Source: Phaeosaccion multiseriatum
Lineage: Eukaryota; Protista; Ochrophyta, other classes
Assembly (NCBI GenBank): GCA_965112735.1
Contig: OZ218952.1
Location: 5,146,001 to 5,210,000 of the forward strand
DNA length: 64,000 nt
Reading direction: 5' to 3'
Shown here: one piece after another, positions 15,431 to 56,622 of the stretch
How the letters are laid out: the number at the start of each line of letters is the position of its first letter
How positions within the stretch are numbered: position 1 is the first letter of the stretch
Notes under the pieces: generated by a model
What the model saw: only the letters and a program-made list of their open reading frames with translations
Database searches by the model: none
Told to the model about the DNA's origin: nothing
Translations under genes and position numbers: made by a program

Positions 15431-15607
15431 GGCGTTGGTTTTCTTTCTTTTAGCTGCGCCCACCCGATCCCCACCTCCAAGCCAGTAAGTCAGTAGGTGC
15501 CTTGAGCTGCCATCGGCAGTTCAGCCTCATAGCTCTAAACGTCGTCTCCAGAGCCAGGAGCGCAGAGGTAGAGAGCGGCACAGTAGGCGAAGATCGGCCG
15601 TGCAGCA

Positions 15608-24500: not shown

Positions 24501-27500
24501 CCTCCTCCTCCTCCTCCTCCTCCTCCTCCTCCTCCTCCTCCTCCTCCTCCTCCTCCTCCTCCTCCTCCTCCTCCTCCTCCTCCTCCTCCTCCTCCTCCTC
24601 CTCCTCCTCCTCCTCCTCCTCCTCCTCCTCCTCCTCCTCCTCCTCCTCCTCCTCCTCCTCCTCCTCCTCCTCCTCCTCCTCCTCCTCCTCCTCCTCCTCC
24701 TCCTCCTCCTCCTCCTCCTCCTCCTCCTCCTCCTCCTCCTCCTCCTCCTCCTCCTCCTCCTCCTCCTCCTCCTCCTCCTCCTCCTCCTCCTCCTCCTCCT
24801 CCTCCTCCTCCTCCTCCTCCTCCTCCTCCTCCTCCTCCTCCTCCTCCTCCTCCTCCTCCTCCTCCTCCTCCTCCTCCTCCTCCTCCTCCTCCTCCTCCTC
24901 CTCCTCCTCCTCCTCCTCCTCCTCCTCCTCCTCCTCCTCCTCCTCCTCCTCCTCCTCCTCCTCCTCCTCCTCCTCCTCCTCCTCCTCCTCCTCCTCCTCC
25001 TCCTCCTCCTCCTCCTCCTCCTCCTCCTCCTCCTCCTCCTCCTCCTCCTCCTCCTCCTCCTCCTCCTCCTCCTCCTCCTCCTCCTCCTCCTCCTCCTCCT
25101 CCTCCTCCTCCTCCTCCTCCTCCTCCTCCTCCTCCTCCTCCTCCTCCTCCTCCTCCTCCTCCTCCTCCTCCTCCTCCTCCTCCTCCTCCTCCTCCTCCTC
25201 CTCCTCCTCCTCCTCCTCCTCCTCCTCCTCCTCCTCCTCCTCCTCCTCCTCCTCCTCCTCCTCCTCCTCCTCCTCCTCCTCCTCCTCCTCCTCCTCCTCC
25301 TCCTCCTCCTCCTCCTCCTCCTCCTCCTCCTCCTCCTCCTCCTCCTCCTCCTCCTCCTCCTCCTCCTCCTCCTCCTCCTCCTCCTCCTCCTCCTCCTCCT
25401 CCTCCTCCTCCTCCTCCTCCTCCTCCTCCTCCTCCTCCTCCTCCTCCTCCTCCTCCTCCTCCTCCTCCTCCTCCTCCTCCTCCTCCTCCTCCTCCTCCTC
25501 CTCCTCCTCCTCCTCCTCCTCCTCCTCCTCCTCCTCCTCCTCCTCCTCCTCCTCCTCCTCCTCCTCCTCCTCCTCCTCCTCCTCCTCCTCCTCCTCCTCC
25601 TCCTCCTCCTCCTCCTCCTCCTCCTCCTCCTCCTCCTCCTCCTCCTCCTCCTCCTCCTCCTCCTCCTCCTCCTCCTCCTCCTCCTCCTCCTCCTCCTCCT
25701 CCTCCTCCTCCTCCTCCTCCTCCTCCTCCTCCTCCTCCTCCTCCTCCTCCTCCTCCTCCTCCTCCTCCTCCTCCTCCTCCTCCTCCTCCTCCTCCTCCTC
25801 CTCCTCCTCCTCCTCCTCCTCCTCCTCCTCCTCCTCCTCCTCCTCCTCCTCCTCCTCCTCCTCCTCCTCCTCCTCCTCCTCCTCCTCCTCCTCCTCCTCC
25901 TCCTCCTCCTCCTCCTCCTCCTCCTCCTCCTCCTCCTCCTCCTCCTCCTCCTCCTCCTCCTCCTCCTCCTCCTCCTCCTCCTCCTCCTCCTCCTCCTCCT
26001 CCTCCTCCTCCTCCTCCTCCTCCTCCTCCTCCTCCTCCTCCTCCTCCTCCTCCTCCTCCTCCTCCTCCTCCTCCTCCTCCTCCTCCTCCTCCTCCTCCTC
26101 CTCCTCCTCCTCCTCCTCCTCCTCCTCCTCCTCCTCCTCCTCCTCCTCCTCCTCCTCCTCCTCCTCCTCCTCCTCCTCCTCCTCCTCCTCCTCCTCCTCC
26201 TCCTCCTCCTCCTCCTCCTCCTCCTCCTCCTCCTCCTCCTCCTCCTCCTCCTCCTCCTCCTCCTCCTCCTCCTCCTCCTCCTCCTCCTCCTCCTCCTCCT
26301 CCTCCTCCTCCTCCTCCTCCTCCTCCTCCTCCTCCTCCTCCTCCTCCTCCTCCTCCTCCTCCTCCTCCTCCTCCTCCTCCTCCTCCTCCTCCTCCTCCTC
26401 CTCCTCCTCCTCCTCCTCCTCCTCCTCCTCCTCCTCCTCCTCCTCCTCCTCCTCCTCCTCCTCCTCCTCCTCCTCCTCCTCCTCCTCCTCCTCCTCCTCC
26501 TCCTCCTCCTCCTCCTCCTCCTCCTCCTCCTCCTCCTCCTCCTCCTCCTCCTCCTCCTCCTCCTCCTCCTCCTCCTCCTCCTCCTCCTCCTCCTCCTCCT
26601 CCTCCTCCTCCTCCTCCTCCTCCTCCTCCTCCTCCTCCTCCTCCTCCTCCTCCTCCTCCTCCTCCTCCTCCTCCTCCTCCTCCTCCTCCTCCTCCTCCTC
26701 CTCCTCCTCCTCCTCCTCCTCCTCCTCCTCCTCCTCCTCCTCCTCCTCCTCCTCCTCCTCCTCCTCCTCCTCCTCCTCCTCCTCCTCCTCCTCCTCCTCC
26801 TCCTCCTCCTCCTCCTCCTCCTCCTCCTCCTCCTCCTCCTCCTCCTCCTCCTCCTCCTCCTCCTCCTCCTCCTCCTCCTCCTCCTCCTCCTCCTCCTCCT
26901 CCTCCTCCTCCTCCTCCTCCTCCTCCTCCTCCTCCTCCTCCTCCTCCTCCTCCTCCTCCTCCTCCTCCTCCTCCTCCTCCTCCTCCTCCTCCTCCTCCTC
27001 CTCCTCCTCCTCCTCCTCCTCCTCCTCCTCCTCCTCCTCCTCCTCCTCCTCCTCCTCCTCCTCCTCCTCCTCCTCCTCCTCCTCCTCCTCCTCCTCCTCC
27101 TCCTCCTCCTCCTCCTCCTCCTCCTCCTCCTCCTCCTCCTCCTCCTCCTCCTCCTCCTCCTCCTCCTCCTCCTCCTCCTCCTCCTCCTCCTCCTCCTCCT
27201 CCTCCTCCTCCTCCTCCTCCTCCTCCTCCTCCTCCTCCTCCTCCTCCTCCTCCTCCTCCTCCTCCTCCTCCTCCTCCTCCTCCTCCTCCTCCTCCTCCTC
27301 CTCCTCCTCCTCCTCCTCCTCCTCCTCCTCCTCCTCCTCCTCCTCCTCCTCCTCCTCCTCCTCCTCCTCCTCCTCCTCCTCCTCCTCCTCCTCCTCCTCC
27401 TCCTCCTCCTCCTCCTCCTCCTCCTCCTCCTCCTCCTCCTCCTCCTCCTCCTCCTCCTCCTCCTCCTCCTCCTCCTCCTCCTCCTCCTCCTCCTCCTCCT

Positions 27501-30500
27501 CCTCCTCCTCCTCCTCCTCCTCCTCCTCCTCCTCCTCCTCCTCCTCCTCCTCCTCCTCCTCCTCCTCCTCCTCCTCCTCCTCCTCCTCCTCCTCCTCCTC
27601 CTCCTCCTCCTCCTCCTCCTCCTCCTCCTCCTCCTCCTCCTCCTCCTCCTCCTCCTCCTCCTCCTCCTCCTCCTCCTCCTCCTCCTCCTCCTCCTCCTCC
27701 TCCTCCTCCTCCTCCTCCTCCTCCTCCTCCTCCTCCTCCTCCTCCTCCTCCTCCTCCTCCTCCTCCTCCTCCTCCTCCTCCTCCTCCTCCTCCTCCTCCT
27801 CCTCCTCCTCCTCCTCCTCCTCCTCCTCCTCCTCCTCCTCCTCCTCCTCCTCCTCCTCCTCCTCCTCCTCCTCCTCCTCCTCCTCCTCCTCCTCCTCCTC
27901 CTCCTCCTCCTCCTCCTCCTCCTCCTCCTCCTCCTCCTCCTCCTCCTCCTCCTCCTCCTCCTCCTCCTCCTCCTCCTCCTCCTCCTCCTCCTCCTCCTCC
28001 TCCTCCTCCTCCTCCTCCTCCTCCTCCTCCTCCTCCTCCTCCTCCTCCTCCTCCTCCTCCTCCTCCTCCTCCTCCTCCTCCTCCTCCTCCTCCTCCTCCT
28101 CCTCCTCCTCCTCCTCCTCCTCCTCCTCCTCCTCCTCCTCCTCCTCCTCCTCCTCCTCCTCCTCCTCCTCCTCCTCCTCCTCCTCCTCCTCCTCCTCCTC
28201 CTCCTCCTCCTCCTCCTCCTCCTCCTCCTCCTCCTCCTCCTCTTCCTCCTCCTCCTTCTCCTCCTCCTCCTCCTCCTCTTCCTCCCCCTCCTCCTCCTAC
28301 TCCTCCTCCTTCCCCTCCTCCTCCTGCTCCTCCTCCTTCTCCTCCTCCTCCTCGTCCTCCTCCTCCTCCTCCTCCTCCTCCTCCTCCTCCTCCTCCTCCT
28401 CCTCCTCCTCCTCCTCCTCCTCCTCCTCCTCCTCCTCCTCCTCCTCCTCCTCCTCCTCCTCCTACACCTCCTCCTCCTCCTCCTCCTCCTCCTCCTCCTG
28501 CTCCTTCTCCTCCTCCTCCTCCTCCTTCTCCTCCTCCTCCTCCTCCTCCTCCTCCTCCTTCTCCTCCTCCTCCTCCTCCTCCTCCTCCCCCTCCTCCCCT
28601 CTCTCCTGATTCTCCTCCTCCTCCTCCTCCTCCTCCCCCTCGTCCCCTCTCTCCTGTTTCTCCTCCTTCCCCTCCTTCTCCTGTCATTTCTACTACTGAT
28701 GAAGCCAGCTACTGTGCAATGCTCGTCGGACGTGGGCTTTGGAGCAATACATACAGAGTCATCACTCGTAAAACCATGTAGCCTTGGGCTGCTCCTCTTG
28801 TTCTGCTTTTGAGCTAGTATATACTCCTGAACCTCGTACTAAACCCCGCCCCTTTGTTCTGCTCCTGTGCCCTTCCTGTCTCCTCTCCTCTCCTCTCCTC
28901 TCCTTTGTTCTACCGTTCTCACTGCCACTGGGCGTCATGTACCATGGTGGTCATCACATCAGACTTTCCTGGAATATGTCTACAGGCAGGAGGAACCATA
29001 GACGGCGATACTTGCTCCGACTGCACATCGGGCTCCCCCGTCATTTGCGACGCGGCTTCCTATGTATGTCAGGTGCGTCCGACCGCAGCATGTCTGCGCT
29101 ACGTAAGAGGGGCTGCCCGTGTGCCCCTGCCTTGCTGCTCCTCCCTAGGCAGCTGCTGGTCTTGATCTTCCTGCTCTGCGCTTCTTCAGGCAGGCAGTGA
29201 AGAGTGGTGGGATTGAAACCTGTCTGTGAGGAGCGGCTTGCTTGTGCGTGAGTGAAGGGTGGGGTAGTGGCATAACGGGCGAGCGACTCACTCCTCTGTG
29301 CTTCCTCTATCCATTCCCCCTGCTCGATTTTCCTGCCCCCCCACCCCCTTCCTTGCCCTGCCCTTGGCCTTGCACGGGCTCCTCCGGCTCCGCTCTCTTA
29401 TCTCCCTCGTCCCCTTCCTAACACTGGCTGCTGTCCCTTGACTTCATGGCGCGTCTCACTCCTGCTTGCTGGGCTGGTGGGACCCTCGCCCCCCTTCACC
29501 CCCACCCTTGCACCGCCGGGACTGGGCAACCTCCGTCCCCCCCCCCGTCCGTGGGTGCTGCGGACGTGGACAACGCTTCTCATCCTTCGCGGCTCTCCCA
29601 GTCTAAGACATTTGACGTAAGTCTAAGTGTCACTGCTCTCTTCTGCTCTTGGCTGGGAACACAGACTCGTGTATGGTCATCGCCACTAGCTTTTGATGCC
29701 TGCACCACCCCTCGCTTCGTCTGCCTGTCGCTGGCCTACCAGTACGCTGTACTGTCGCTTGCCTTTGTGTGCGTTTGTCGAAAGTCCTTTTGGTGTGCAA
29801 TGCTCAGATGAAGTCATTCCTCCTGTAGTATTGCGCAATACTGTAGTAAGGCGCAATATTCGAGCATAGCACATTGGGTACTTTGACTTGACCCGACTGA
29901 TGCCCAACGAACGTCTTGGATGGCGTCACTGGAACCCCTCCAACGTGTCACCTCATGCCATGACCATCCTGTTGCTTGCTTGCTGCTCTTTGCTCGCCTT
30001 GCAGAACTGCGTCGTGGAGTGCAGCGCTGCCTATGTGTGTATTGTGAGTCGGTGACGTGAAGCCCTTTCCAGCTCGCCCCATCCAAAGAGCACTACTGCT
30101 GATTCGCCAGTTCTTCTTGGATCTCGAGGGGATGATGGGGAGACGAGAAATGGATTAGCCCTATCAACTCCGGCTCCCCCCCATCGGATGTTGCTTTACT
30201 TGCTCGACTCGTGTGTGGGCTGTCCCGTCCCCTCCTTCTACTCTAGTTGCTTGCATTCTTCATTTGTTGTCGGCTAGCCTAGCTAAAGGCTTCCTCAGTT
30301 CCCTTACCTTCCGGTGTAGGCTGATTTGCCTTGAACTAACCCCCCCCTACCGCCCTCTGCATGCATCGCACCACCCCGTGCATCGCAGGGAGCATCCTTT
30401 GTAGGCACATCAAATGCTACCTGCAGCGACTTTGCTTGCTTTGTAAGTGTCGCTCTCTTCTTTTGGCGGACTTTACATGTACAGCAGCCAGCACCGCCGC

Positions 30501-33500
30501 ACCCTCCTGCTGGCCTCCTTTTCCATCTGCTGCCGCCTGAGACTTGGCTTGTCGCTGCTGGTGCCCTTGGACTTCCCCCCCTTCTCCCAGAGGCTTCTTG
30601 GCTGTGAATTTGTGACTTGCTTGCTTCCTTTCCTCATGGCAAGCCCACAACCGGCCGAGCTGCACCGCATCTCAACACGCGCGCTGCCCCTTGTTCCCAT
30701 GAACAGACTTGTTTTGGCTGTTGTCTGCGCAAGACAACGCATCTATGCTTGGACTTTTTTGCACGCCTGTTGGTCCGGCCTCCGAGTGACAGAGTCTGCC
30801 TCATAAATCCCCCCCCCCGCTCATTGCCTGCCTGCCTGCGTGCTTTGCTTGCCTCTCCTCATCTGGCTGTGTTCATACAATGCACGGCGACTTTGTCTCC
30901 ACTTCGTTGCCACCACCAGAGCGCGAAAGTTTGCCTCTCACAGGGATCCCCAGGGGTAGAGGAGCAGGACTGCACGGCAAAGGTGACGTGCAGCGCATCA
31001 CTTGCTTGCCAGGTAAGTCGTCGCTGCAAAACAACCGGGGGAGGATTACTTTGATACCTTTGCACCAGTGGTGGGGAGCTCGACGATGAAGATGTTCTTT
31101 GCTATCACGTGCCAGAAAGAGTGGGCCTAGTATGGAGGAGACAGCATGTCAGTGCTTGCCGCTACGCGTGCGGCCCAGGCTGGGATCGTGGCCCCAGTCG
31201 TGCTCCTTGGCTCCCTTGTCGCCATCTTTGGCCACCACGTATGTCCAGAGTTTGCCTCTCTCTGGCGGCTCAGCCTGCTGCGTTGGCTCTTCCTGCTGCT
31301 GCTCTGCCTGTTGCTGCTCTGCCTGCTGCTGCTGCTGCTCTTGCTGCTCTACTTGCTGTTTCTGCTGCTCTCTCTGTTGCTGCTTTGCCGTCTGCTCCCT
31401 CTGTTGCCGCTCGGCGTGCTGACGTCGCTCCAGGCCTTCTCCTTCGAGTTGTAACTTCTCCACGAACTCTCGGGTGAGAACCTGTTCCCAGCGTGATGTC
31501 TGTTGCTGCTGTGGGGCTGGCTGTGCCTCCTCTAATCTCGTGTTCCATGTGACGGTTCCACTCTTGGTCCCGCCCCCACCTCCCCCGCTCGCGCTACTGC
31601 TGCTGCTCCTGCTGCTGCTCCTGCTGCTGCTCCCGCTGCTGCTCCTGCTGCTGCTCCTGCTGCTGCTCCCGCTGCTGCTCCTGCTGCTGCTCCCGCTGCT
31701 CGAGGGCTGGTCCTCGTCCTCGCTGTCATCCTCCTTCTCCGCTGTCTCTGGTAGCTTCCCCTTCTCCACGTGACTCCCGAACACCGTGCCGTCGTGTCTG
31801 CGGTTCGTCACGAATGTGTAGGACGAGCTGGAGATGAACCGCTTCTGTGAAGGGATGTAGAAAAGGAGACAGGCTGATCTGTGGTTGGGGCTCTGTCCCA
31901 CGTACACTGCCGAGTGCGTCTTGTCGTTGTGCCACTGCTTGTGCTTCTTGTTGCCCACCCGCACCTTCGCCTGCTCTCCGAAGATGTGTAGGTGCTGTAG
32001 GTCAGGCTTGCGCTTGAAATACAGCTCGTAGGGGGACTGCTGCTGCCCCCTCCTGCACCTGGTGTTGTAGAGAAGCTGCGCCAACTTGTACGCTACGAAC
32101 CTCAGCTGCTTCGAGTGCTCCTCCAGCTTCGCCTCCTCAATGAAAAGAATAGACATTCGCGCCAGCTCCTTGTGTCGAGCCTCGTTCAGTCCGTTCTGCG
32201 CTTGACAATTGGGGTCCGTCAGCTTGACCTCAATGCCCTGGGAGTAGAGCATCTTCTTCGCTGCCTTCGTCTTGATGAGCTCCGATCCGTTGTCTGCTGA
32301 CAGACACTGCACCTTGTACCCCGCTGTCCTCTCCCCTGGAATGAATACTGTGGTGTTGAGGTCGTCATACACGCTCTGGAAGTGCGCCTCCGTCTTTCCC
32401 CCCACCTTCCTGCACCAGCCCATACCCGTGTGCGGGCAGCACGCCTGCAACACGTGCTCTCCTTCGAGAGGAATGGTGTCGAGCGTTACCTGTGCCAGCG
32501 GTGCCTTGGGGTAGTCGATGAACTGCTTACTCTGAGCTGCCTTCGTCATCTTCACCTCTGCGCAAGTCTTGCACGGCGCCCTCTTCCCGCACAGTGTCAC
32601 GCCCTCCAGCTTGGCCTGTCGCCGTAGTTCTTGATCGTTGCGGTGGCCCTTCTTGCAGTGGTAAGTCATGTAATCACTCCACTGCTCCGTGGCCTCCTCG
32701 ATCTTGAATTGTAGCATGTCAAGCCCCAGCTCTGGGTCCTGCGTCGTGTGCACCGTCTCTGGTGCGTCTGCTGAGGGGCCGAAATAGACTGGCTTCCCCG
32801 CTGGCCTTGCGCTCCCCCCCAGTAGGTCTGAGAGGTTCTTCTCTGCAAAAATGCAGAAAGGTACGTCTGGCGACACCACTACCTCCAGCCCCTTCAGTCC
32901 TCTTTTGCCGTCGTTGGAGACGTAGCTGATGTTCACCTTCCCTTTGCCCATTATCTGCGCGTGCGACTTGCCGTCTGCGAGTTGCACTAAACTCTGATGA
33001 GCGCAGAAATCGTACAGTCCATCCAAGTTGGGCCACACATTGAGCGCCGATCCGCTGTCTGCGAGCCCCTGCCGTGTGCCATCCGCCCCCGACTTCAGCT
33101 TGGACATATGGTAGAGAGAATGGCCGCTCCCCCTCTCCTGTAGCGTCCACGGAATGCTGAAAATGGCGCTGGTGGAGCCTTCCACATGCTCGCCATCTTT
33201 CTTCTTCCTGCTGTTTGGGCAGTCTGCACGCTGGTGCCCCGGCTTGTGGCAGTTGAAACACAGCTCCTCCTTGGACGGACACGTCGTCCGCATGTGCCCC
33301 TTTCTCCCACACCTGTAACAGCGTGTGTTGGACCGATCTTTCTCTCCTGCCCCTGTGGTGGTCTGTCTACCCCCCCCTGCTGGTTGCTGTGTCTTCTGCC
33401 TTTGCTGGTAAATGTGGAAAAGGCCCCGCTCAAGGTCCTCTCCCGCCTCCCTCGCTTGCGCTTGGAGGTCACTGTCAAACCGCTGCACTTGCTGTTTGAA

Positions 33501-36500
33501 CCGATTAAACTCGTCCTCTGTTTCTACCGAATGACCGTGCACTTGGCCGAACGACTCCCATCTCTGCCCCATACGCCTGAGGAACTTGTCCTTGATGATG
33601 GAGTAGGACATAGGAAGCTGCTCCTCCGTCATCAACACGTTGAGTTGGAGAAACTTGTTGAGGTAGGCAAGTCCCGTCTCCCCCACCCCTGGCCTCAGAT
33701 CGTGCATCTCGGAGGTGAGAAACTCTTGTCGCTGTGACTGCGTGCTCCCCATCACTGCCTCCTTGATTGCCTGCATCAATAGTACCAGGTCCACTTGGAA
33801 CCGCGCTGTGCGAGTGCGTTCTTCTATGGCATCCCTCATGTCCGAGGGAATGGCCTCCAAAATCTTGAGGCCCGTCTGTTGGTACAGACTGAACGTCAGG
33901 GCATACTTAGAGTCCCGGGAGGCGTCGTCTGCGTTGGGGATCTTATCACTATCCACCAAGAATGCCTTTGCCCCCATCCCCCCTATGTGATCCGTGACCG
34001 CTCGCATAAATCGCAAGAGAGGCATCACTCCCTCCGATTCCAACTTCTTGTCAAACTCATTGTTCTTCGGCTTGAACGTGAGTTCCAGCAGCTGCTGTGC
34101 TGTACTCCCCCCCCCGCTGGGGGTCACTGTTCCTCCGACTGAGGAGATAGTGACTGGTGCTGCGGCCGCTGCCGTGGGCACTCCTTGCTGTGTGATGTGT
34201 TTGGCCAACGCTGCCGCTATCATCTTTTCCATCATTTCAGCCATCTGCTGCTGTGCGTCTCCTTCTATCGCGGAACTCGCACTGACGGGCGCCGCTGCGT
34301 CCGCCTTTTCAACGCCTTCTTCTTCCGCGCCTGGCATGGCTAACGAAAGGACTCCTTCTCTCTCACTTGAGTTATCCGACCAAAACTCGCCTGTGTGCCG
34401 TCGCCGACTACGTAGAACCAGCTAGCTGTGAAGTGTCGCGACAGCTGTCGTGTTGCGATATCTCCTCTACGATGACAGGGACAAGCTAGAGTAGTGTCAA
34501 CTCGTGTATTAATAATACCTACTGAGAGATGCGTTCAAGGAAGTGATGGCCGTGGCCATACATGAATATCGATATCCACATCGATATTGTACGTCGATAT
34601 AGTGCTCAGTCACAAATGGCGATACTTATCACAACACTCTCTTCTTCTGGCTGACTTTACATGTACAGCAGCAAGCACCGCCGCACCCTCCTGCTGGTCT
34701 CCTTTTCCGTCTTTGCCGCCTGAGACTCGTCACTGTTGGTGCCTTTCCCCCCCTTCTCCCAGAGGCTTCGCTCTTTGCTGTGAATTTGTGACTTCCTTCC
34801 TTTCCTCATGGCAAGCCCACAACCGGCCGAGCTGCACCGCATCTCAACACGCGTGCTGCCCCTTTTTCCCGTGAACAGACTTGTTTTGGCTGGCTGTTGT
34901 CTGCGCAAGCCAACGCATCTATGCTTGGAGTTTTTTGCACGCCTGTTGGCTGGCTGGTCCGGCCTCCGAGCGACAGAGTCTGCCTCATGAATCCTTCCCC
35001 CCGCTCATGATTGCCTGCGTGCTTTGCTTGGCTCCCTCTCCTCATCTGTGTTCATACAATATACGGCGGCTTTGTCTCCACTTCGGTTCCACCACTAGTT
35101 CGTGCTTGTTTGCATCTCATGGGGAGAAGTAGAGGAGCAACAGGAGTGCGAGGCGGAGCTGACGTGCAGCACTTCAAAGGCTTGCGGAGTAAGTCGTTGC
35201 TTTTCAATGGAACAAGGGGGGGGGGGGCGGGGGGGCGTAAGCAAGTCAACCTGTGGAGCTCACTCGCCGCTCAGTGCAGCTTACCGCAACCTTTGTGCGT
35301 ATTTTGATCCTCACGCGCAAAGCACCTGCTACGGATGCTGGCTTAGATGAGCTGCATTTGCTTGCCAAGATGTGGGTGGCTGACATGGAAAGAAAGAGGG
35401 CATGCGGCCGGGAGGCGATAGAAGGCACGACCGGAGGGATGAGGAGTCTAACTGGTGTACTTCCCACCCCCGCGACCCTCCCTCCTCTGGCCTTTCCTGG
35501 CCTCGCTGCACCCATCCGTCACCTCTGCAGGCTGTTGCGCTGTTAGGGAACTCCCGGGGCACTTGTGATGACGCCGGCTCCTGCGACGCCACCGACTTTG
35601 GGCCCCTTACGGTGCGTGCGCGAGGAGGGGGTGAGATGTAAGGAGTCCAGTAACGGGTTCATTTGACTTGGGGACTGTGCTGTTTGTTGCGGGAAGGTGA
35701 TGCCTGCATCGAGCTCCTGTCCTCACTGTTGTACTTTTGTCGAATTGCGTATTCTCAGGTTCAGACAACGACAGGAGGATCAGCGTGCTGCACTGGCGTC
35801 GGGTGGTAAGTCATCAAGCCCGAAGCAAAGCTCGATGCAGCGTGCGCGTGTATCCCCTCCTCAATGGCCGGCACGGTCATCCCTTGATGGTCATTTCCTC
35901 CCTTGCTGCGCTCGCCCGTACAAGTGTATGTGTGGCTGTGTGTGTGTGTGCCATTGCACGCTGCACCGTACTCCCTCACTCGCCCCTTCAAGCAAGGAAG
36001 CTCACTTTTATTTTCTCTGCCTGGTTTGTTTCGCTCCACAACCCCCCTCCCCCCTGTCTGCTCGACTCGTGCGACTCTTCGGCACGAGCGAAGCCCTGCG
36101 GACGTTATCGTATGCGGTGAGGACGATCCATTCATGTTCCTGCAGAGAAAGTGCTGAATAGCGCAAGGGGGCCTTGGAGCAACCCATGGAAGAGTCTCGC
36201 TTCCATCTATTTGCTGTCCCCTCCTTGTCTCCTGTCTACTGTCCCGCTTGATATCTGCCGCTTTTCATCGCACTGTGTGCACCTCGGATTCTTTTTCTGG
36301 AAGTGCTCTGCGGTAGCTAGTCTGACCCACTTTTCTCTGGTCTTTTGCGGCTGGGTCGCTCCCCGTCTCCTCCTGCCACGACGTCTCAGACATCGACGAG
36401 GACGGCATTGCAGACCATCTCGACAAGTGAGTGTTCTAAACTGTGGACAGACTGGAGTGGGAATGAAGATGTTGTGCGTGTTTGTGGGCGTGCTGATTGT

Positions 36501-39500
36501 GTGCGTGTCCCCCCCCAGCGTCTCCCTGTAGAGGGTCGACACACTGACTACATTGTCCCCCTCTCCTTGTTGCTCCTTGCTTGGTCCTCGCAGCTGCCCT
36601 GACGCAGACAACCCCAAGCAAGAGGATGCCGATGGAGACGGAGTTGGAGACGCTTGTGACAAGTAAGGAGCGAGTTTACGTGAATGTGCCCCCCCCAGCG
36701 TCTCCCTGTAGGGAGGGTCGACACACTGAATACATTGTCCCCCTCTCCTTGTTGCTCCTTGCTTGATCCTCGCAGCTGCCCTGACGCAGACAACCCCAAG
36801 CAAGAGGATGCCGATGAAGACGGAGTTGGAGACGCTTGTGACAAGTAAGGAGCGAGTTTGCGTGAATGTGCCCCCCCCCAGCGTCTCTCTGTCATGGCAT
36901 CGTCGCCCCCTGCCTGTCATGTTTTCCCGTGCGTGCGGGTTTGTGACTTGGCCGGCTCCCTCCTGTGTGTGGCCAAGTGCCCTGCCTGGTGTCTTTCTGC
37001 TTCCGTGGAGGAGCTCGCGCTGACTACACCTCCCTTCTCTCTGGCCTCTTTGCCTCCTCTGCTCCTTCCAGCTGCCCTTTTGTGGCCAACGCGGACCAGA
37101 CTATTGTCCCTAACTGTGGTGAGCAAGGGATGTATTGCCCTGGCTGGTGATGTGTAATGCTCTACTGACTTAGGTTGCGTGGCCTCCAGCGTCTATCGCG
37201 GTTTCGCCCCTGCTCGCCCACGCACCTTGTTTGCTGGCATCTAAGCTCGCTCCCCTCTTACCTTTCTACCGTTCTCACTGCCACTGGGCGTCATGTGCCA
37301 TGGTGGTCATCACATCAGCCTTTGCTGAATTATGTTACGAGGCAGAAGGATCCATATCAGGACCCGACAGTGATACTTGCTCCGGCTGCTCCTTACCCGT
37401 CATTTGCGACGACGCTTCCAATAGAGCATGTGAGGTGCGTCCGAGCGCAGCATGTCTGCGCTACGTAGGAGGGGCTGCCCGTGTGCCCCTGCCTTGCTGC
37501 TCCTCCCCAGGCAGCTGCTGGTCTTGACCTTCCTGCTCTGCGCTTCTTCAGGCAGGCAGTGAAGAGCGGTGGAATTGAAACCTGTCTGTGAGGAGCGGCT
37601 TGCTTGTGTGTGAGTGAAGGGTGTGGGGTAGTGGCATAGCGGGCGAGAGACTCACACCTCTGTGCTTCATCTGTGCGTTCCTCCTCTGCTCGATTTCCCT
37701 ACCCCCCCACCCCCTTCCTTGCCCTGCCCTTGGCCATGCACGGGCTTCTCCGGCTCCGCTCTCTGGTCTCCCTCGTCCCCTTCCTAACACTGGCTGCTGT
37801 CCCTTGACTTCATGGCGCGTCTCACTCCTGCTTGCTGGCTGGTGGGACCCTCGCCCCCCTTCGCCCCCACCCTTGCACCGCCGGGACTGGGCAATCTCCG
37901 TCCCCCCCGCCCGTCCGTGGGTGCTGCGGACGTGGACAACGCTTCTCGTCCCTGCGGCTCTCCCAGCGTAAGACATTTAACGTAAGTCTAAGCATCAGAC
38001 CTTCACCCTTGTCACTGCTCTCTTCTGCTCTTGTGAACACAGACTTGCGTACGGTCATCGCCACTATTGATGTCTGCACCGCCCCTCGCTTCGTCTGCCT
38101 GTCGCTGGCCTGCGTTTGTCCTAAGTCCTTGACTTCTTTTCGGTACTTTGACTTGACCAGACTGATGCCCATCGAACGTCGTGGATAGCGTCATTGGAAC
38201 CCCTCCAACGTGTAATCACCTCATGCCATGACCATCCGTATTGCTTGCTGCTCTTTGCTCGCCTTGCAGAACTGCGAAGTGGAGTGCAGCGGTGACTTTG
38301 CGTGTGGGGTGAGTCGGTGACGTGAAGCCCTTTCCACTTCACCCCATGCAAAGAGCACTACTGCTGGCTGGCCACTTGCTTCTTGGATCTCGAGGGGATG
38401 ATGGGGAGACGAGTAAAATGGATTAGCCCTAACAACTCTGCCGCCCCCCCCCGAGATGTTGCTTGTACTTGCTCGATTCGTGTATGGGCTGTCCTGTTCC
38501 CTCCTGCACCCCTAGTTGCTTGCATTCTTCACTTGTTGTCGGCTAGCCTAGCTAAAGAAGGCTTCCTCATTTCTCTTACTTTCCGGTGTGGGCTGATTGG
38601 CCTTGAACTCACTCCCCCCCCTGCTCTTATATGCATCGCACCACCCCATGTGCTCTTCCCCTGCACATGGCAGTTTGCATCCTTTCGCAGCGCCCATGCC
38701 CTGTAGAATGTGCATGCTGCTTCGAAGGAGAACTTCGATTGTCTGTGCTCCCCGTGACCTCCTCTCACGTGTGGCTGCTCTTACCCCCCCCCTCCTGCTA
38801 CTTGTTGCTTCTGTCGTTGCTACCTGTACCCGTTGTACCTCCTCCCCCTCCCCCGCTCGGACTGCTGCTCTTCGGCGATGGCTCTTGGTGCGAATTGTCT
38901 CTGCCGTTTCATACCTGGGGCCCTCTCTACCCTCGCTCGTGTGGCTGTATCAGATCGTCACCTTTGAGGTACGTAGAGCTTGACTTGTTGTGAACGAAGC
39001 CTGGTGCTTGATGAACAGTGAAGCGTGGCTGGCTTGGGCGCGGGTGGTGTCGTGCGGGGCGGGTTCATTGCCAGCCCATCGCTTGGTCTGACTGTCACCA
39101 CTCGCCTGCCAGTGTGCTGTAGCTAGTACCCCGAAGTGCCTTGGCGTGGGCGTTGCTTGGGCACTGGTTCGTGACTTTCGAACACTTCATCCCTATTGCT
39201 TGCCGCTCTTTGCTCGCCTTGCAGGACTGCGACGTGCAGTGCAGCGGCAACCGAGCGTGTGCGGTGAGTCGGTGACGTGAAGCCCTTTCCACTTCACCCC
39301 ATGCAAAGAGCACTACTGCTGGCTGGCCACTTCTTGGATCTCGAGGGGATGATGGGGAGACGAGTAAAAATGGATTAGCCCTAATAACTCTGCCCGCCCC
39401 CCCCGAGATGTTGCTTGTACTTGTTCGATTCGTGTATGGGCTGTCCCGTTCCCTCCTTCACCCCTAGTTGCTTGCATTCTTCACTTGTTGTCGGCTAGTC

Positions 39501-42500
39501 TAGCTAAAGGCTTCCTCAGTTCTCATACTTTCCGGTGTGGGCTGATTGGCCTTGCTTGAACTCACTCCCCCCCTGCCGATATATATGCATCGCACCACCC
39601 CATGTGCTCTTCCCCTGCACATCGCAGTTTGCATTCTTCCTCGGCACCTCAAAGGCTACCTGTACGGGTAGTGAGTCTCGTTCGTGTAGGGTAAGTCTCT
39701 TTATCTTCGTCTGGCTATAGCTAGATGTACGCCTGCACCAACCGCGGCATCCTCCTAGCTGCTGGCGTGCTGTTATCCATCTCTCCCACCGCCTGAGATT
39801 AAACTCCTGGTGCCCTTCCTCCCTTTCTCCCGGAGGCTTCTTTGCTTCTTGTCTCAGGGGGAGGGGTTTGGGGGGAGACGAGTAGATGGAGATGCTGTAG
39901 TTGCTCGACTTGTTTTGTGGGCGCCCCGCTCCCTCCTCCTCCACACCACTAGTTGCTTACGTTCTTCATTTTTTTCCTCATTCCTCTTACATTCCGGTGT
40001 GGGCTGATTGGCCTTGCACTAACCCCCCTACCGCCCTCTGCACGCATCGCACCACCCCGCACATCGCAGAGAGCATCCTTCCTCGACGACTCAAAGGCTA
40101 CCTGCAGTGGGGAGGTTTCGTGTGATGTAAGTGTCGCTCTCATCTTCTTGCTGACTTTAAATGTACAGCAGCACCGCCGCACCCTCCTGCTGGCATCCTT
40201 TTCTGTCTGTTGCCGCATGAGACTCGTCACTGCCGGTGCCCTTCCTCCCATTCTTCCGGAGGCTTCTTTGCTTCTTGTCTCAGGGGGGGGGGTTTGGGGG
40301 GAGTGCCGAGACGAGTAGATGGAGGTGCTGTAGTTGTTCGACTTGTATGTGGGCGCCCCACTCCCTCCTCCTCCTCCACCACCACCACCACCACTAGTTG
40401 ATTACGTTCTTCACTTTTTTCCTCCGTTCCCTTACTTTCCGGTGTGGGCTGATTGGCCTTGAACTAACCCCCCTGCCGCCCTCTGCATGCATCGCACCAC
40501 CCCGTACATCGCAGATAGTATTCGTTCTCGGCGACTCAAAGGCTACCTGCGAAACTGCTCTTTCGTGCCTTGTAAGTGTCGCTCTCTTTTCTTCTTGCTG
40601 ACTTTACATGTAGAGCAGCAAGCACCGCCGCACCCTCCTGTTGGTGGCCTCCTTTTCCATATGTTGCCGCCTGAGACTCGTCACTGGTGGTGCCCTTCCT
40701 CCCCTTCTCCCAGAGGCTTCTTTGCTGTGAATTTGTGACTTGCTTCCTTATTTTCCTCATGGCAAGCCCACAACCGGCCGAGCTGCACCGCATCTCAACA
40801 CGCGTGCTGCCCCTTCTTGTTCCCATGAACAGACTTTCTTGTTTTGGCTGTTGTCTGCGCAAGCCAACGCACCTATGCTTGGACTTTTTGCACGCCTGCT
40901 GGTCCGGCCTCCGAGCGACAGAGTCTGCCTCATGAATCCTCCCCCCCGCTCATTGCCTGCCTGCGTGCTTTGCTTGCCTCTCCTCATCTGTGTTCATAAA
41001 ATGCACGGCGGCTTTGTCTCCACTTCGGTACCACCACTAGAGCGTGGTAGTTTGCCACTCACAGGAAGGAAAGGAGGAGCAGGACTGCGAGGCGGAGCTG
41101 ACGTGCAGCGATTCAAATGCTTGCGTAGTAAGTCGTTGCTTTTCAATGAAACGAAGGGGGGGGGGGGGGTGGGACGTAAACAAGTCACCTGTGAAGCTCA
41201 CTCGCCGCTCAGCGCAGCTTACCGCAACCTTTGTGCATATTTTGATCCTCACGCGAAAAGCACCTGCTACGGATGCTGGCTTAGATGAGAGCTGCATTTG
41301 CTTGCCAACATGTGGCTGGCTGGCATGGAAAGAAAGAGGGCGTGCGGGAGGCGATCGACGGCACGACCGGAGGGACACTAGAATATGGAGTCTAACTGGT
41401 GTATTTCCCACCCCCGCGACCCTCCCTCCTCTTGCCTTTTCTGGCCTCGCTGCACCCATCCGTCACCTCTGCAGAGTGTTGTGCTGTTCGGGAACTCCCG
41501 GGCCACGTGTGATGTGGCCGAGTCCTGCGAGTTAGTTACGGTGCGTGCGCGAGGAGGGGGTGAGATGTAAGGAGTCCAGTAACGGGTGTCATTTGACTTG
41601 GGGACTGTGCTATTTGTTGCGGGAAGGTGATGCCTGCATCGAGCTCCTGTCCCCACTGTTGTACTTTTGTCGAATTGCGTATTCTCAGGTTCGGACAACG
41701 ACAGGAACAGCGTGCTGCACTGGCGTCGGGTGGTAAGTCATCAAGCCCGAAGCAAAGCTCGATGCAGTGCGCGCGTGTACCCCCTCCTCGATGGCCGGCA
41801 CGGTCATCCCTTGATGGTCATTTCCTCCCTTGCTGCGCTCGCCCATACAAGCTTATGTGTGTGTGTGTGCGGTGTGCCATTGCGCGCTGTACCGTACTCC
41901 CTCGCTCGCCCGTTCAAGCAAGGAAGCTCACTTTTATTCTCTCTTTCTGGTTTGTTTCGCTGCCTCCACAACCCTCCCCCCCCCCCCTGTCTGCTCGACT
42001 CGTGCGACTCTTCGGCACGAGCGAAGCCCTACGGACGTTACCGTATGCGGTGAGGACGATCCATTCATGTACCTGCAGAGAGCGTGCTGAATAGCGCAAG
42101 GGGACCTTGGAGCAACCCATGGAAAAGTCTCGCTTGCATGGGCCCTTCCTTCTACTCCTCCTCCTTGTCTGCTGTCCCCCTTTATTATCTGCTGCTTTTC
42201 GTCCCACAGTGGATATCCTTTGAAACATCACAGGACTGACTGTATTGCCCTGGCTGGTGATGTGTAATACTCTACTGACTAAGGTTGATATATCTCTCTC
42301 TCACTCATTCCTTAATTTGGACGATGTGGTGGTGCTTGCTTTCAGACGAGGATGGCCAGATGGAAGGAGACCCGATGGTTTTCGGCTTCAAGCAGCAAAT
42401 CTTCCTCTTCAAGGGAGCCCACAACGCTTGGTACGCTGCCTTGGCGGAGAGGCACTTGCAGTTAAACTGGAGGCTGTCCGTCTTCCCCTCCTGCGAGAAC

Positions 42501-43739
42501 GGCGCTCAGCCGGTGAGTCAAGAGAAGCGGCGGTATTGGGGGGACTCGTCGTCGAATCTGAGCACTTGAGCTCCCGAGACAGTCAGCCAGTGACAGGGTG
42601 GAGAGGACTCCTTGCATGGTGCTTCGTATGAGTCCTGCCTGTGCCCTCTTGCCTTGCCTGGGGATGGTGGATGGCACCCTATACCAGTGCCACCGCTCTC
42701 GTCAGCCACCCACCCTGGTCAAGTACTGGCCGTTCCCCTTACTGCCTCACTCGCTCCTCTTTTCGCTCGGTGGCGGTCTCACGCGTGACTTGTCGGTCTC
42801 TTCTCTCTCTCTTCCATTAGCCAGACTCCTTGGCTTGCCCCCCTTTGACTCATGAACCCCTCATCACCTTCCCTTTGCAAGCACACAACCGCACGCACGC
42901 ACGCACGCACACAGACATACGCCACCGCCTTGGCCTTTACCTTCCCCCCCCCTCTGGACGGGGATGACAAGACCGCTCTCCTTGGAGGGGCGGGCACGGC
43001 TGCGTCGTCGAGAGTGCTGGTGGAGGTCATAGACGTGGAAAAGTACAACCCAGACTACATCCAGGGGGAGGAGCTCACACCCCGTGCCGAGCAAATCCTG
43101 GGCTACGGCTCTCTGAGAGTCACCATCGAGGACAAGAAAATCACCAAGCCGGGGCTCTACCACATGGCCAACGGTGGTAAAGTGATGGCCTTCAACGCGT
43201 ACGGCCCCTGTCAGGTGAAGCGCGACATCCACATGATGGAAGAGCTCAACGAGGCGGAGAGGCTCAAAGCCTCGCCTCTCAGACGCCGCCTCTCGGAGAT
43301 GGCAGTGGATGACGACCTTGCAGCGCTGCTGGCTGTGGAGTCTCGCCTGCACAGGGCCGAGGATAGGACCCTTTGTGAAGAGTGGATCGCAGACAAGCGC
43401 GTCAAGAGGAATCTCTTCACGGAGCCCGGGTCGTGGGCGAGCGTTTACATCTTCACCGACACGTACTCCTTCCAGGTGGACTACCGCCAGGAGATTGAGC
43501 GCTGCTACGCCCATGTGCTCGACGTTGGCTTCATCCACAAGCCCAATGACATCGGCGTGGAGCGCTGGAGCGGGGTCATGGGAGAGACTCAGATCCTGAA
43601 ACGCGACAGCTCTGGGCATCCCCTCGACAGGGAGAGGGACCTCATCCTGTCCTCCTCCAAGGACGAGGACTACGTCGTGGACGGGCCCTGGGGGACGGAC
43701 TTTGTGGCCCGCTTCGACAGCGCCTGGGAGGAGGAGTAG
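21554..43739 (+). CDS. Large secreted Cys-rich micro-exon protein (~793 aa): signal peptide, Cys-repeat module 1, TSP3 repeats, Cys-repeat module 2, VWD-like C-terminal domain
   Basis: 28 AG/GT-bounded exons join in phase without stops (2382 nt): 21554-21641, 28963-29072, 29602-29616, 30005-30043, 30389-30442, 30944-31012, 35144-35188, 35531-35611, 35759-35805, 36094-36116, 36390-36426, 36594-36662, 36776-36844, 37072-37118, 37319-37434, 37967-37981, 38270-38308, 38954-38968, 39225-39263, 39628-39690, 40070-40126, 40515-40571, 41065-41127, 41475-41540, 41689-41732, 42027-42049, 42346-42512, 42915-43739. Starts MELSLRRALRLMLLSVVVLGQQIGTVHG-K. Contains CPDADNPKQEDADGDGVGDACDN and GDPMVFGFKQQIFLFKG. 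Confidence 0.75.
21949..28680. repeat. Giant (TCC)n/(GGA)n trinucleotide array; uninterrupted about 22025-28242 (~2070 units) with degenerate flanks
   Basis: Directly visible in the sequence. It lies in the first coding intron of the 21554-43739 gene. Confidence 0.95.
31032..31130 (+). pseudogene. Inverted fragment of copia reverse transcriptase
   Basis: Plus strand reads QPGEDYFDTFAPVVGSSTMKMFFAITCQKEW, the copia RT motif Q.PG.DY.ETFAPV, on the strand opposite to the gag-int ORF. Confidence 0.8.
31149..34337 (-). CDS. Copia gag-pol polyprotein, 1062 aa, ending before RT
   Basis: Two CCHC knuckles (CYRCGRKGHMRTTC, CFNCHKPGHQRADC), aspartic protease LADSGSA, HHCC (YHCKKGH...CKTC), integrase D-D-E (VTLDT, SADNGSE, QNGLNEAR) and SH3-like AVYVGQS. 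Confidence 0.9.
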   Translation of the reverse strand: MPGAEEEGVEKADAAAPVSASSAIEGDAQQQMAEMMEKMIAAALAKHITQQGVPTAAAAAPVTISSVGGTVTPSGGGSTAQQLLELTFKPKNNEFDKKLESEGVMPLLRFMRAVTDHIGGMGAKAFLVDSDKIPNADDASRDSKYALTFSLYQQTGLKILEAIPSDMRDAIEERTRTARFQVDLVLLMQAIKEAVMGSTQSQRQEFLTSEMHDLRPGVGETGLAYLNKFLQLNVLMTEEQLPMSYSIIKDKFLRRMGQRWESFGQVHGHSVETEDEFNRFKQQVQRFDSDLQAQAREAGEDLERGLFHIYQQRQKTQQPAGGGRQTTTGAGEKDRSNTRCYRCGRKGHMRTTCPSKEELCFNCHKPGHQRADCPNSRKKKDGEHVEGSTSAIFSIPWTLQERGSGHSLYHMSKLKSGADGTRQGLADSGSALNVWPNLDGLYDFCAHQSLVQLADGKSHAQIMGKGKVNISYVSNDGKRGLKGLEVVVSPDVPFCIFAEKNLSDLLGGSARPAGKPVYFGPSADAPETVHTTQDPELGLDMLQFKIEEATEQWSDYMTYHCKKGHRNDQELRRQAKLEGVTLCGKRAPCKTCAEVKMTKAAQSKQFIDYPKAPLAQVTLDTIPLEGEHVLQACCPHTGMGWCRKVGGKTEAHFQSVYDDLNTTVFIPGERTAGYKVQCLSADNGSELIKTKAAKKMLYSQGIEVKLTDPNCQAQNGLNEARHKELARMSILFIEEAKLEEHSKQLRFVAYKLAQLLYNTRCRRGQQQSPYELYFKRKPDLQHLHIFGEQAKVRVGNKKHKQWHNDKTHSAVYVGQSPNHRSACLLFYIPSQKRFISSSSYTFVTNRRHDGTVFGSHVEKGKLPETAEKEDDSEDEDQPSSSGSSSRSSSGSSSRSSSRSSSGSSSRSSSRSSSSSASGGGGGGTKSGTVTWNTRLEEAQPAPQQQQTSRWEQVLTREFVEKLQLEGEGLERRQHAERQQREQTAKQQQREQQKQQVEQQEQQQQQAEQQQAEQQQEEPTQQAEPPERGKLWTYVVAKDGDKGAKEHDWGHDPSLGRTRSGKH
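34451..34636 (-). repeat. Candidate 5' LTR (186 bp) of the copia element
   Basis: Minus strand begins TGTTGTGATA and ends TATCGCAACA (9/10 terminal inverted match). No partner LTR and no convincing adjacent primer-binding site, so the inner boundary is tentative. Confidence 0.5.
36509..36888 (+). repeat. 182-bp tandem unit consisting of one intron plus one 69-nt TSP3 exon (~2.1 copies)
   Basis: Near-identical units. Exons 36594-36662 and 36776-36844 differ by one codon (GGA/GAA). Confidence 0.9.
38674..38706 (+). pseudogene. Pseudo-exon of the Cys-repeat exon family
   Basis: Acceptor context matches that of exon 39628. It reads FASFRSAHAL then TAG, and the usual GTAAGT donor is absent. Confidence 0.6.
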
Positions 43740-44251
43740 TTGCTTAGTTAGGTGGGAAGGGAGGGGTAGGAGAGTGGATGGTAGCTGGGTGCTGCTGCTG
43801 GCTGGGCCTGGAGCACGAGAGAGATCGACGCGCCTTGTGAAGGGCCTTGTGGAGGGGAGGTGGCATGCGCATAGGAGCTCAGAGGGAAGCAAGGCTTGAG
43901 GGGGTTTCTTCGATTCGGAAGACAGTAGCTAGGGTTCTGCTGCTGATGGAGCTGTGTAGAAGAGGGGCTCCGGGCCTTGCTTGGTTGCCCTTCTTGGGGG
44001 ATGTTTCTTTAGTTTGCTTGGGGAGCTTAGTAGTGCTAGCGATGGGAAAGGGGGGTGTAGCTTATGTTATGTTAGTTTAGTTGGGAGGGGGTCGGAGGGA
44101 TTTATTGACTTATAGGGAATCACCCAAGAAACAAGCCGCTCCTCTCGGGCACTCTGTAGTTGGAGGTTTAGCTTCATTAGGAGGGGGGGGGGCATTTTAA
44201 AAGGGTAGTACGTACAGTAATCAAATTGGAGAAAAGAAAAAGAAATCAGTA

Positions 44252-45847
44252 CTGTGATTTCGCGGATGAGTGGCACTTTTTACGCCCAATTACGCCCCAT
44301 TAATTTTTTTTTACGCCAAATGACGACTTTTTTTACGACGTTTGACGACGTTTGACGACGCTTTAGCCCCTTATTTGACGCCCTTTTACGCCCTTTTACG
44401 CCCTTTTACGCTCTTTGACGCTTCGCCTTAATTTCGTCTAAAAAAAATCACGTGTAAAAAAATCACGGAAGAGGGCGTAAAAGGCCGTAAAAGGGCGTAA
44501 AAGGGCGTAAAAGGGCGTAAAAGGGCGTAAGAGGGCGTCAAATAGGGGGCTAAAGCGTCGTCAAACGTCGTCAAACGTCGTCAAAAAAGTCGTCATTTGG
44601 CGTAAAAAAAAATTACTGTGATTTCGCGGTTGAGTGGCACTTTTTACGCCCAATTACACCCCATTAATTTTTTTTTACGCCAAATGACGACTTGTTTTAC
44701 GACGTTTGACGACGTTTTACGACGCTTTAGCCCCCTATTTGACGCCCTTTTACGCCCTTTTACGCCCTTTTACGCTCTTTGACGCCCTTTTATCTTAATT
44801 CGCCTTCAATTCGTCTAAAAAAAATCACGTAAAAAAAAATCACGGAAGAGGGCGTAAAAGGGCGTAAAAGGGCGTAAAAGGGCGTAAAAGGGCGTCAAAT
44901 AGGGGGCTAAAGCGTCGTCAAACGTCGTCAAACGTCGTCAAAAAAGTCGTCATTTGGCGTAAAAAAAAATTAATGGGGCGTAATTGGGCGTAAAAAGTGC
45001 CACTCAACCGCGAAATCACAGGTACTACCTATATATTAAATATTAAATAAATTAATAATATATATTTATTAATATATATAATATAATTTAAAAATTTATA
45101 TATAACCGCGAAATCACAGGTACTACCTATATATTAAATATTAAATAAATTAATAATATAAATTTTTAAATTATATTATATAATATAATATAATTTAAAA
45201 ATTTATATTATTAATTTATTTAATATTTAATATATAGGTAGTACCTGTGATTTCGCGGTTGAGTGGCACTTTTTACGCCCAATTACGCCCCATTAATTTT
45301 TATATATATATATTAATAAATATATATTATTAATTTATTTAATATTTAATATATAGGTAGTACCTGTGATTTCGCGGTTGAGTGGCACTTTTTACGCCCA
45401 ATTACGCCCCATTAATTTTTTTTTACGCCAAATGACGACTTTTTTGACGACGTTTGACGACGTTTGACGACGCTTTAGCCCCCTATTTTACGCCCTTTTA
45501 CGCCCTTTTACGCCCTTTTACGGCCTTTTACGCCCTTTTACGGCCTTTTACGCCCTCTTCCGTGATTTTTTTATACGTGATTTTTTTTAGACGAAATTAA
45601 GGCGAATTAAGATAAACGGGCGTCAAAGAGCGTAAAAGGGTGTAAAAGGGCGTAAAAGGGCGTCAAATAGGGGGCTAAAGCGTCGTCAAACGTCGTCAAA
45701 CGTCGTCAAAAAAGTCGTCATTTGGCGTAAAACAAAATTAACGGGGCGTAATTGAGCGTAAAAAGTGCCACTCAACCGCGAAATCACAGTAATGGGGCGT
45801 AAATGGGCGTAAAAAGTAAAAAGTGCCACTCAACCGCGAAATCACAG
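44252..45847. mobile_element. Nested non-autonomous foldback/MITE complex with CTGTG...CACAG ends and TA target-site duplications (Tc1/mariner-like)
   Basis: Outer copy 44252-45847 is flanked by TA. Its right arm is interrupted at a TA by a TA-flanked insert, 44616-45789, made of two full ~0.41-kb copies in opposite orientation (44616-45021 and 45364-45789) around an AT-rich core. TIR CTGTGATTTCGCGGTTGAGTGGCACTTTTTACGCCC. Internal (TTTTACGCCC)n and (TTTGACGACG)n arrays. Confidence 0.85.
45104..45260. repeat. 157-bp perfect palindrome (78-bp arms, one central base at 45182) with an A/T-only centre
   Basis: Arms were compared base by base as reverse complements. Confidence 0.9.
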
Positions 45848-46038
45848 TAGGTGCACGTGTTGGTTTCACACAAACCATTTGTTGGCGACTTTTTTGGGGC
45901 CCTTCCTGGCGACGAGAGCGAGAGCGATCTTCCCTTCTCCCCCCTCTCGCTCCCCTCCTTCCTTGCTGATTCTCGCCTCCCTCCTCCATCCTTCATGCTT
46001 TTTTCTACTCCCTGCTCCTCCTGCTGGTCACGCAGAAG

Positions 46039-47393: not shown

Positions 47394-47429
<36 letters not shown>

Positions 47430-48677: not shown

Positions 48678-48716
<39 letters not shown>

Positions 48717-54743: not shown

Positions 54744-54777
<34 letters not shown>

Positions 54778-55260: not shown

Positions 55261-55296
<36 letters not shown>

Positions 55297-56581: not shown

Positions 56582-56622
<41 letters not shown>

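Follow-up and report, generated by a model that had tools for sequence, protein, structure and literature searches.

Why should the repeat exons of a single gene have diverged further from one another than the introns that flank them? This question is raised by a locus of the stramenopile alga Phaeosaccion multiseriatum (GenBank assembly GCA_965112735.1, contig OZ218952.1, positions 5,146,001 to 5,210,000), which was analysed as a stretch of 64,000 nucleotides (nt) of intron-rich eukaryotic DNA with a GC content of ~58% (the window, whose own numbering is used throughout). The gene concerned is composed of 28 exons and 27 introns, all of the latter being GT-AG, and encodes, without an internal stop, a protein of 824 residues including 61 Cys, in which a signal peptide (called by eye in the first exon, S) is followed by a first Cys-repeat module, TSP3-like repeats, a second Cys-repeat module and a VWD-fold domain; no membrane segment was seen downstream of the signal peptide in the 824-residue frame. 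It is considered likely that this gene represents a modular secreted protein which was extended by exon duplication, and in which selection then repeatedly replaced residues at a few positions of the repeat.

The exons of module 1 are arranged in the order A1, m1+B1, C1, D1, D2, E1 and linkers F1 and G1, and those of module 2 in the order A2, m2+B2, m3+B3, C2, C3, C4, D3, E2, F2 and G2, where each B repeat consists of a 15-nt micro-exon and a 39-nt exon. Repeat exons span 15-116 nt and are all in phase 0, and both modules start and end in phase 1. A self-comparison of positions 28600-46000 revealed long direct duplications of 75-96% identity, i.e., 28908-30380 versus 37264-38650, 34637-36277 versus 40584-42211 and 38233-38684 versus 39188-39638, in addition to shorter duplications around the C and T exons. 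Within five blocks, which partly overlap, the proportion of aligned sites that differ was found to be 20.9, 20.9, 23.1, 29.1 and 31.6% for the repeat exons and, in the same order, 8.1, 7.8, 4.3, 6.2 and 9.9% for the introns of these blocks (per-block Fisher p 1.6e-4 to 1.9e-12). Pooled over the five blocks, 133 of 548 exon sites (24%) differ versus 280 of 3770 intron sites (7.4%), and introns differ by only 3.3% within 20 nt of an exon.

An earlier note on this DNA had drawn attention to three exon pairs, and the alignments bear out each of them. For example, exons B2 (38270-38308) and B3 (39225-39263) differ at 9 of 39 nt and at 6 of 13 residues, the Cys being fixed, while the next 69 intron nt are identical; the capping exons A1 (28963-29072) and A2 (37319-37434) differ at 21 of 104 nt and by three in-frame indels, with five differences in the first 135 intron nt; and E1 (35531-35611) and E2 (41475-41540) differ at 14 of 66 nt, versus 2 of 147 in the downstream intron. 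The direction of the difference therefore stands, but not its scale: only the best-conserved intron parts had been compared, and over whole homologous introns, which differ by 4-10%, the excess is ~3-fold and not 10-fold. The duplicated linker exons (4/67 nt) and TSP3 exons (1/69 nt; 5/136 nt together, range 1-9%) act as controls within the same gene and are no more diverged than their own introns; therefore, the ~3-fold inversion is specific to the Cys-repeat exons. On the block alignment, exon divergence thus exceeds intron divergence, and the ratio of nonsynonymous to synonymous rates (dN/dS, or omega) is not well below 1; neither of the two outcomes that the earlier note had named as counting against its observation was obtained.

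The codon-level data, for which all statistics after RNA correction employ the corrected exon model described below, show that single-hit codons comprise 39 nonsynonymous and four synonymous changes, that the Cys columns are kept in 25 of 25 cases, and that exon indels are multiples of three in eight of eight cases, as opposed to 11 of 55 for intron indels. In a joint likelihood analysis of codon pairs and intron counts (110 codons, with no exon used twice), a neutral model gave a log-likelihood (lnL) of -1299.95, and a model with an omega of 3.8 at the intron silent rate gave -1271.83 (2 x delta lnL 56), i.e., a nonsynonymous rate ~3.8 times the intron rate. When the silent rate was left free, the silent-to-intron ratio was 1.47 (about 0.6-2.9) and omega was 2.5, with omega = 1 being rejected (p ~0.012), and three overlapping pair sets returned omega values of 2.2-3.3 (p 0.003, ~0.012 and 0.026 against omega = 1). 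These values, together with the recurrence of changes at four repeat positions, support the diversifying selection that had been put forward in the earlier note, the exposed residues and the arms race it invoked being putative. Relaxed constraint on a spacer rod, combined with unusually constrained introns, could draw on the fact that the one-class silent-to-intron ratio can exceed 1; however, relaxation cannot raise exon divergence above the neutral rate, omega = 1 is rejected, and the ~3,800 aligned intron sites, with their many frame-breaking indels, look unconstrained, so that this explanation is already largely refuted and hardly credible.

The other cause offered in the earlier note was gene conversion, which would keep the introns young, the exons being merely older and under ordinary constraint. 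Intron divergence is indeed heterogeneous within one duplicated block, ranging from 4.7% to 14% (p 2e-6), and it is therefore probable that gene conversion or unequal crossing-over occurs in the introns. Furthermore, many close sibling copies are present in the DNA runs, a 500-nt segment around micro-exon m3 looks imported, and the silent-rate ratio might reach ~2.9. Nevertheless, fourfold-degenerate exon sites in otherwise unchanged codons differ in only 3 of 44 cases (6.8%), which is similar to introns and lower than the 22% averaged over the exons (p 0.011), the control exons of these blocks show no greater age, and intron divergence does not increase close to the exons; conversion would also need to have included both flanks of the 39-nt exons every time. 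A model of older exons with purifying and neutral sites reached an lnL of -1274.5 and needs almost no purifying class, and it is nine lnL units worse than a neutral background with ~31% of codons at an omega of ~18 (lnL -1265.2), which was the best among models of equal size. Based on this comparison of models, diversifying selection fits best, while intron conversion alone fits much worse and is quite unlikely to be the cause. Intron recombination reshuffles the units, yet it leaves the codon changes unexplained.

The residues that change occupy a fixed register within the repeat. Four positions were found to change in 39 of 41 within-class comparisons, as compared to 6 of 42 for three framework positions; such pairs are not independent, and six independent pairs show the same positional pattern. 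The variable positions are the first residue of the unit (10 of 11 pairs), loop positions 2 (7 of 8) and 4 (8 of 8), and the residue following the second Cys (14 of 14), each of which exhibits about two nucleotide differences per codon. A site-directed mutational process that alters the same codons regardless of selection could produce a comparable pattern, and several observations are consistent with it: of the four hot positions, two lie on either side of the exon-exon junction, with approximately two nt changes per codon; the last codon differs in 14 of 14 pairs, by 2.1 nt per codon, despite the usual splicing constraint on exon ends; triple-hit codons are in excess (seven observed, 1.8 expected); and a neutral background with mutation-hot codons (lnL -1267.2) lies just 2 lnL units under the selection model. 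The one difference seen between the transcript of sample S2 and the assembly also falls on a hot codon. In contrast, junctions outside the repeats (E-F, F-G and TSP3) are conserved within the gene, loop positions distant from junctions are equally hot, and neither a template region in the window nor stops or frameshifts were found. Moreover, exon substitutions (56 transitions to 77 transversions, versus 159 to 121 in introns, with all six types present) are transversion-rich, as under replacement selection and unlike the action of a deaminase. Such a mutational process is consequently viewed as rather unlikely. Also unlikely is a mechanism dedicated to the rewriting of specific codons, especially those beside the junctions of repeat exons, across a large secreted protein family of the Cys-solenoid type; if true, it would give this stramenopile alga a repertoire for recognition that is under continuous renewal.

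The aforementioned S2 difference is located at position 41126, in the last and most variable codon of D3, where the S2 transcript (run X5) carries a G and the assembly, as well as three DNA runs of sample S1, a T, resulting in a Val to Gly change. It is a single event and the sole difference among six listed X5 pieces of the window gene (~1.1 kb among the pieces listed), and the resulting Gly codon at the D3 end is identical to that of D2. This identity, and the large size of the family, would suit a scenario in which short exon patches are swapped in from more distant family members by micro-conversion, akin to the ‘segment switching’ of viper toxins, and are then filtered by selection, as would the clustering of differences, 58% of which are next to another difference in exons versus 34% in introns. 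Codon-level selection likewise clusters differences, however, and inspection of the window, without a formal test, uncovered no variable patch common to non-sister exons, such that this scenario appears very unlikely.

Diversifying selection is thus retained as the preferred explanation, although a number of points weigh against it. Only ~110 independent codon pairs are available, and the pairwise model applied to them is home-made and assumes equal codon frequencies; the interval of the silent-to-intron rate ratio is wide, and the hot-codon model is close in likelihood. A plain Nei-Gojobori calculation gave a dN/dS of 1.4-1.9, which is not significant (uncalibrated, and based on the exon model before RNA correction). 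Finally, both the fold and the ligand of the Cys repeat are putative, and the Cys-repeat exons returned no match in Pfam, nor in PDB sequences searched with a repeat profile.

The 3' half of the gene model is based on run X5, which is recorded as ‘DNA?’ and behaves as RNA, its contigs covering exons and skipping introns. From T3 onward to the final exon, the chain is backed by this run at a depth of ~190-230, the evidence being GT..AG joints, the letters that lie between them, and loose ends; the run furthermore added two 15-nt micro-exons and moved the D acceptors 24 nt upstream. A proposal that D2 is a pseudo-exon with a lost acceptor was rejected, as the RNA joints place the D exon starts at these upstream sites. 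Module 2 is spliced with all exons included (one contig-level run, depth ~206, 12 joints not displayed), and no exon skipping was seen in the module 2 contigs of X5, which drop rare forms. A second transcript form in X5 (depth ~185) possesses a single B exon and represents a close paralogue or another haplotype, because its letters also occur in DNA runs. When compared by hand in joint tables, this form differs from the window gene at the post-Cys residue in six of six repeats and at the first residue in four of four.

All exons are located on the forward strand, and the 5' half of the gene, i.e., exon S and module 1, is assigned by homology and phase. The candidate first exon S (21554-21641), containing the start codon and a signal-peptide-like segment, lies outside RNA coverage, and its phase 1 fits exon A1. 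The latter, the predicted capping Cys repeat of module 1, is a homologue of the RNA-supported A2, and an A1-like piece is present in run X5. It is followed by micro-exon m1 (29602-29616), which would encode the first strand of the B repeat and is homologous to the RNA-supported m2, and by the Cys repeats B1 (30005-30043), C1 (30389-30442), D1 (30920-31012; by homology to the RNA-corrected D3), D2 (35099-35188; intact) and E1, the last of module 1. Linker exons F1 (35759-35805) and G1 (36094-36116), which are not hypervariable, lead to the TSP3-like exons H (36390-36426), T1 (36594-36662), T2 (36776-36844) and T3 (37072-37118), of which T3 is represented in the RNA. The chain of module 2 starts with the capping repeat A2 and continues with m2 (37967-37981), B2, m3 (38954-38968), B3, C2 (39628-39690), C3 (40070-40126), C4 (40515-40571), D3 (41041-41127), E2 and linkers F2 (41689-41732) and G2 (42027-42049); these are supported by RNA joints, except that m2 is represented by X5 letters between the A2 and B2 joints, and m3 by loose ends in the same run. 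The VWD-fold domain is encoded by V1 (42346-42512), which carries the GDP motif, and V2 (42915-43739), which contains the stop codon; for these two exons an RNA joint, homologues and the fold of a diatom-type homologue provide support. Of note, the first intron of the gene is 7.3 kb long and contains a (CTC)n tract that is perfect over 6,216 nt (22027-28242, length as assembled).

The history of the array can in part be read from its introns. Immediately upstream of V1, 47 nt of the T3 intron are found again, and a sibling in which T3 directly precedes V1 exists both as DNA and as RNA; because of these two observations, module 2 is best read as a duplicate that was inserted into the T3-V1 intron. 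Alternative splicing is not needed as the source of the T3-V1 transcript, given a DNA joint from 37126 to 42212 in run X3 and the T3-intron relic before V1. The numbers of B, C and D copies differ between the modules, and there are siblings that carry a single B exon or lack module 2. The introns between C exons are chimeras with C-D starts and B-C ends, and a 12-nt relic of a C-type exon (38672-38684) resides in the B2 intron behind an intact acceptor, being unused in the RNA seen. The adjacent segment of ~500 nt around m3 (38685-39187) has no homologue in the window and a high summed depth in the DNA runs, and was probably imported from a paralogue. The D1-D2 intron, which measures 4.1 kb, harbors a truncated Ty1/copia-like retroelement on the reverse strand (31025-34636), with one long terminal repeat (LTR; 34451-34636) and an open reading frame resembling gag, protease and integrase (34337-31149); neither a reverse transcriptase (RT) nor a second LTR was seen in this element. 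Its left end adjoins base 12 or 13 of the D1 intron and its LTR adjoins a C-D type intron, an arrangement which suggests that a deletion or unequal crossover removed its RT, its other LTR and a C exon.

With regard to the domains, searches were made exon by exon. V2 has 78 relatives (P0001-P0078; best E 7e-29, ~30-40% identity), among which are secreted diatom proteins, and V1 corresponds to the N-terminal part of the domain including the GDP motif, the exons of the domain aligning to homologues at E 7e-29 and 6e-13. For homologue P0001, a domain model (predicted local distance difference test, pLDDT, 89.6) produced 19 best structure rows at Z 8.1-11.3, which are nearly all VWD-bearing proteins (mucins, VWF, FCGBP, RGM and vitellogenin), the next row being at Z 4.3 and unrelated folds not exceeding that value; judged from this model, the predicted C-terminal fold is that of VWD. 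Pfam missed the domain in the ten homologues scanned, and some members of the set fuse it to subtilase, chitin-binding, PAN or CBM domains. The fourth residue of the GDP motif is Met in this gene (GDPM, as opposed to Gly-Asp-Pro-His) and variable in homologues. Exons T1 and T2, each encoding 22 residues, weakly match Pfam TSP_3 (PF02412) when searched singly, at E ~0.004 and 17 bits with a curated cut-off of 25, and the DxDxDGxxD pattern is visible in the TSP3-like exons. The consensus Cys repeat begins with a strand of alternating hydrophobic residues and a turn; another, short strand then terminates in Cys and is followed by a loop, in most cases of five residues, the second Cys and one further residue. 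Simple units measure 18-19 residues, and this pattern suggests a disulfide-stapled beta-solenoid. Neither the Cys repeat nor TSP3 was present in any of the 78 V2 relatives, and the exons scanned contained no ROC-COR, NB-ARC, LRR or TPR matches in Pfam. An ESM Atlas search with A2 and a search of metagenome contigs with V2 gave nothing useful, Foldseek returned no match with E below 0.001, and no description of this Cys-repeat family was found in the literature.

In the proposed mechanism, a secreted modular protein would grow through duplication of single phase-0 exons and of entire phase-1 modules, assisted by unequal crossing-over in look-alike introns. Following duplication, introns and silent exon sites would drift at the background rate, while selection would repeatedly fix new residues at loop positions 2 and 4, directly behind the second Cys, and where the next repeat opens; the two Cys and the framework of the second strand would be held constant. 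The repeats would stack as a solenoid whose variable positions form one outward edge, and we infer that this edge may bind some external partner that itself changes, for example a parasite, a virus, a grazer, a bacterium or a mate, with the constant TSP3 and VWD parts anchoring the protein in the extracellular matrix. As GDP-motif and VWD domains occur in adhesive and mating-responsive diatom proteins, the predicted function could be adhesion or the recognition of mates just as well as defence.

Several further features surround the gene. A set of AT-rich nested inverted repeats of ~380 nt, which resemble miniature inverted-repeat transposable elements, is located downstream (44237-45847), followed by a spliced gene of the JmjC-like type that has a long insert of acidic, low-complexity sequence (46039-49826) and a spliced Brr2/ASCC3-like helicase gene that runs past the window end (50363-64000), both recognized by eye. 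Upstream are a BUD23-like gene (13970-15463, reverse strand), PQ-loop-like and gamma-carbonic-anhydrase-like genes, and a long open reading frame (6718-8046, reverse strand) with a signal-peptide-like start followed by Trp, reminiscent of plastid targeting, and several copies of the motif HPAYAxRxERPGWExRWG.

How non-plant algae recognize enemies or partners is poorly understood, and the only candidate variable receptors in stramenopiles that we know of are LRR/TPR proteins of brown algae, which are intracellular. A family of secreted proteins built on a different, unnamed Cys-stapled repeat, with selection concentrated at four positions, is a testable candidate for extracellular recognition, and the repeat itself may be a natural binding scaffold.

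The ROCO (LRR) and NB-ARC-TPR genes of brown algae encode one repeat per exon, undergo intragenic and intergenic recombination and show positive selection at fixed repeat positions (PMC3341825, PMC11378527). The gene described here is similar in that it belongs to a stramenopile, encodes its repeats on separate exons of compatible phase, exhibits positive selection at fixed positions and varies its repeat number through recombination. The proteins of the ROCO and NB-ARC-TPR type, however, are intracellular and possess signalling domains, and their genes have one fixed exon length, spare exons that are inactivated or inverted, and alternative splicing that has been documented, whereas the present protein is predicted to be secreted, is Cys-stapled, combines TSP3 with VWD and lacks a signalling domain, no skipping having been seen in the module 2 contigs. 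The micro-exon genes (MEGs) of schistosomes contain small symmetric exons and have a raised dN/dS in the mature part (PMC4350168); a signal peptide and many small symmetric exons are shared features, yet MEGs are restricted to platyhelminths and diversify by exon skipping, while here all module 2 exons are included in the one contig-level RNA run, each exon carries a Cys-paired repeat, and omega is higher and site-specific.

That exons may evolve faster than introns is already known from other gene families. In duplicates of snake three-finger toxins and phospholipases A2, for example, introns are more alike than exons and the Cys framework is kept, the segments that separate the Cys being altered (PMC2474615), although in that case the pattern lies between whole small genes, as opposed to between repeats within one gene and between genes; the window gene has neither homology to these toxins nor any sign of toxicity. 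The GDPH-domain adhesive and VWD-domain proteins of diatoms are secreted and modular, with a C-terminal domain starting at a GDP motif (10.1101/2023.03.06.531300, PMC8027222, PMC12803021), from which the present gene is set apart by motif description, having GDPM and not GDPH. The locus also does not resemble a diversity-generating retroelement, as it has no template copy in the window, displays all six substitution types rather than adenine-specific ones, and its neighbouring copia-like element shows no RT. What the locus adds to these systems is RNA backing for its exons, controls within the gene itself, a test at silent sites that counts against conversion, and a second gene copy and one between-sample difference that vary at the same positions. 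It works like the ROCO, MEG and snake toxin systems, yet belongs to none of them.

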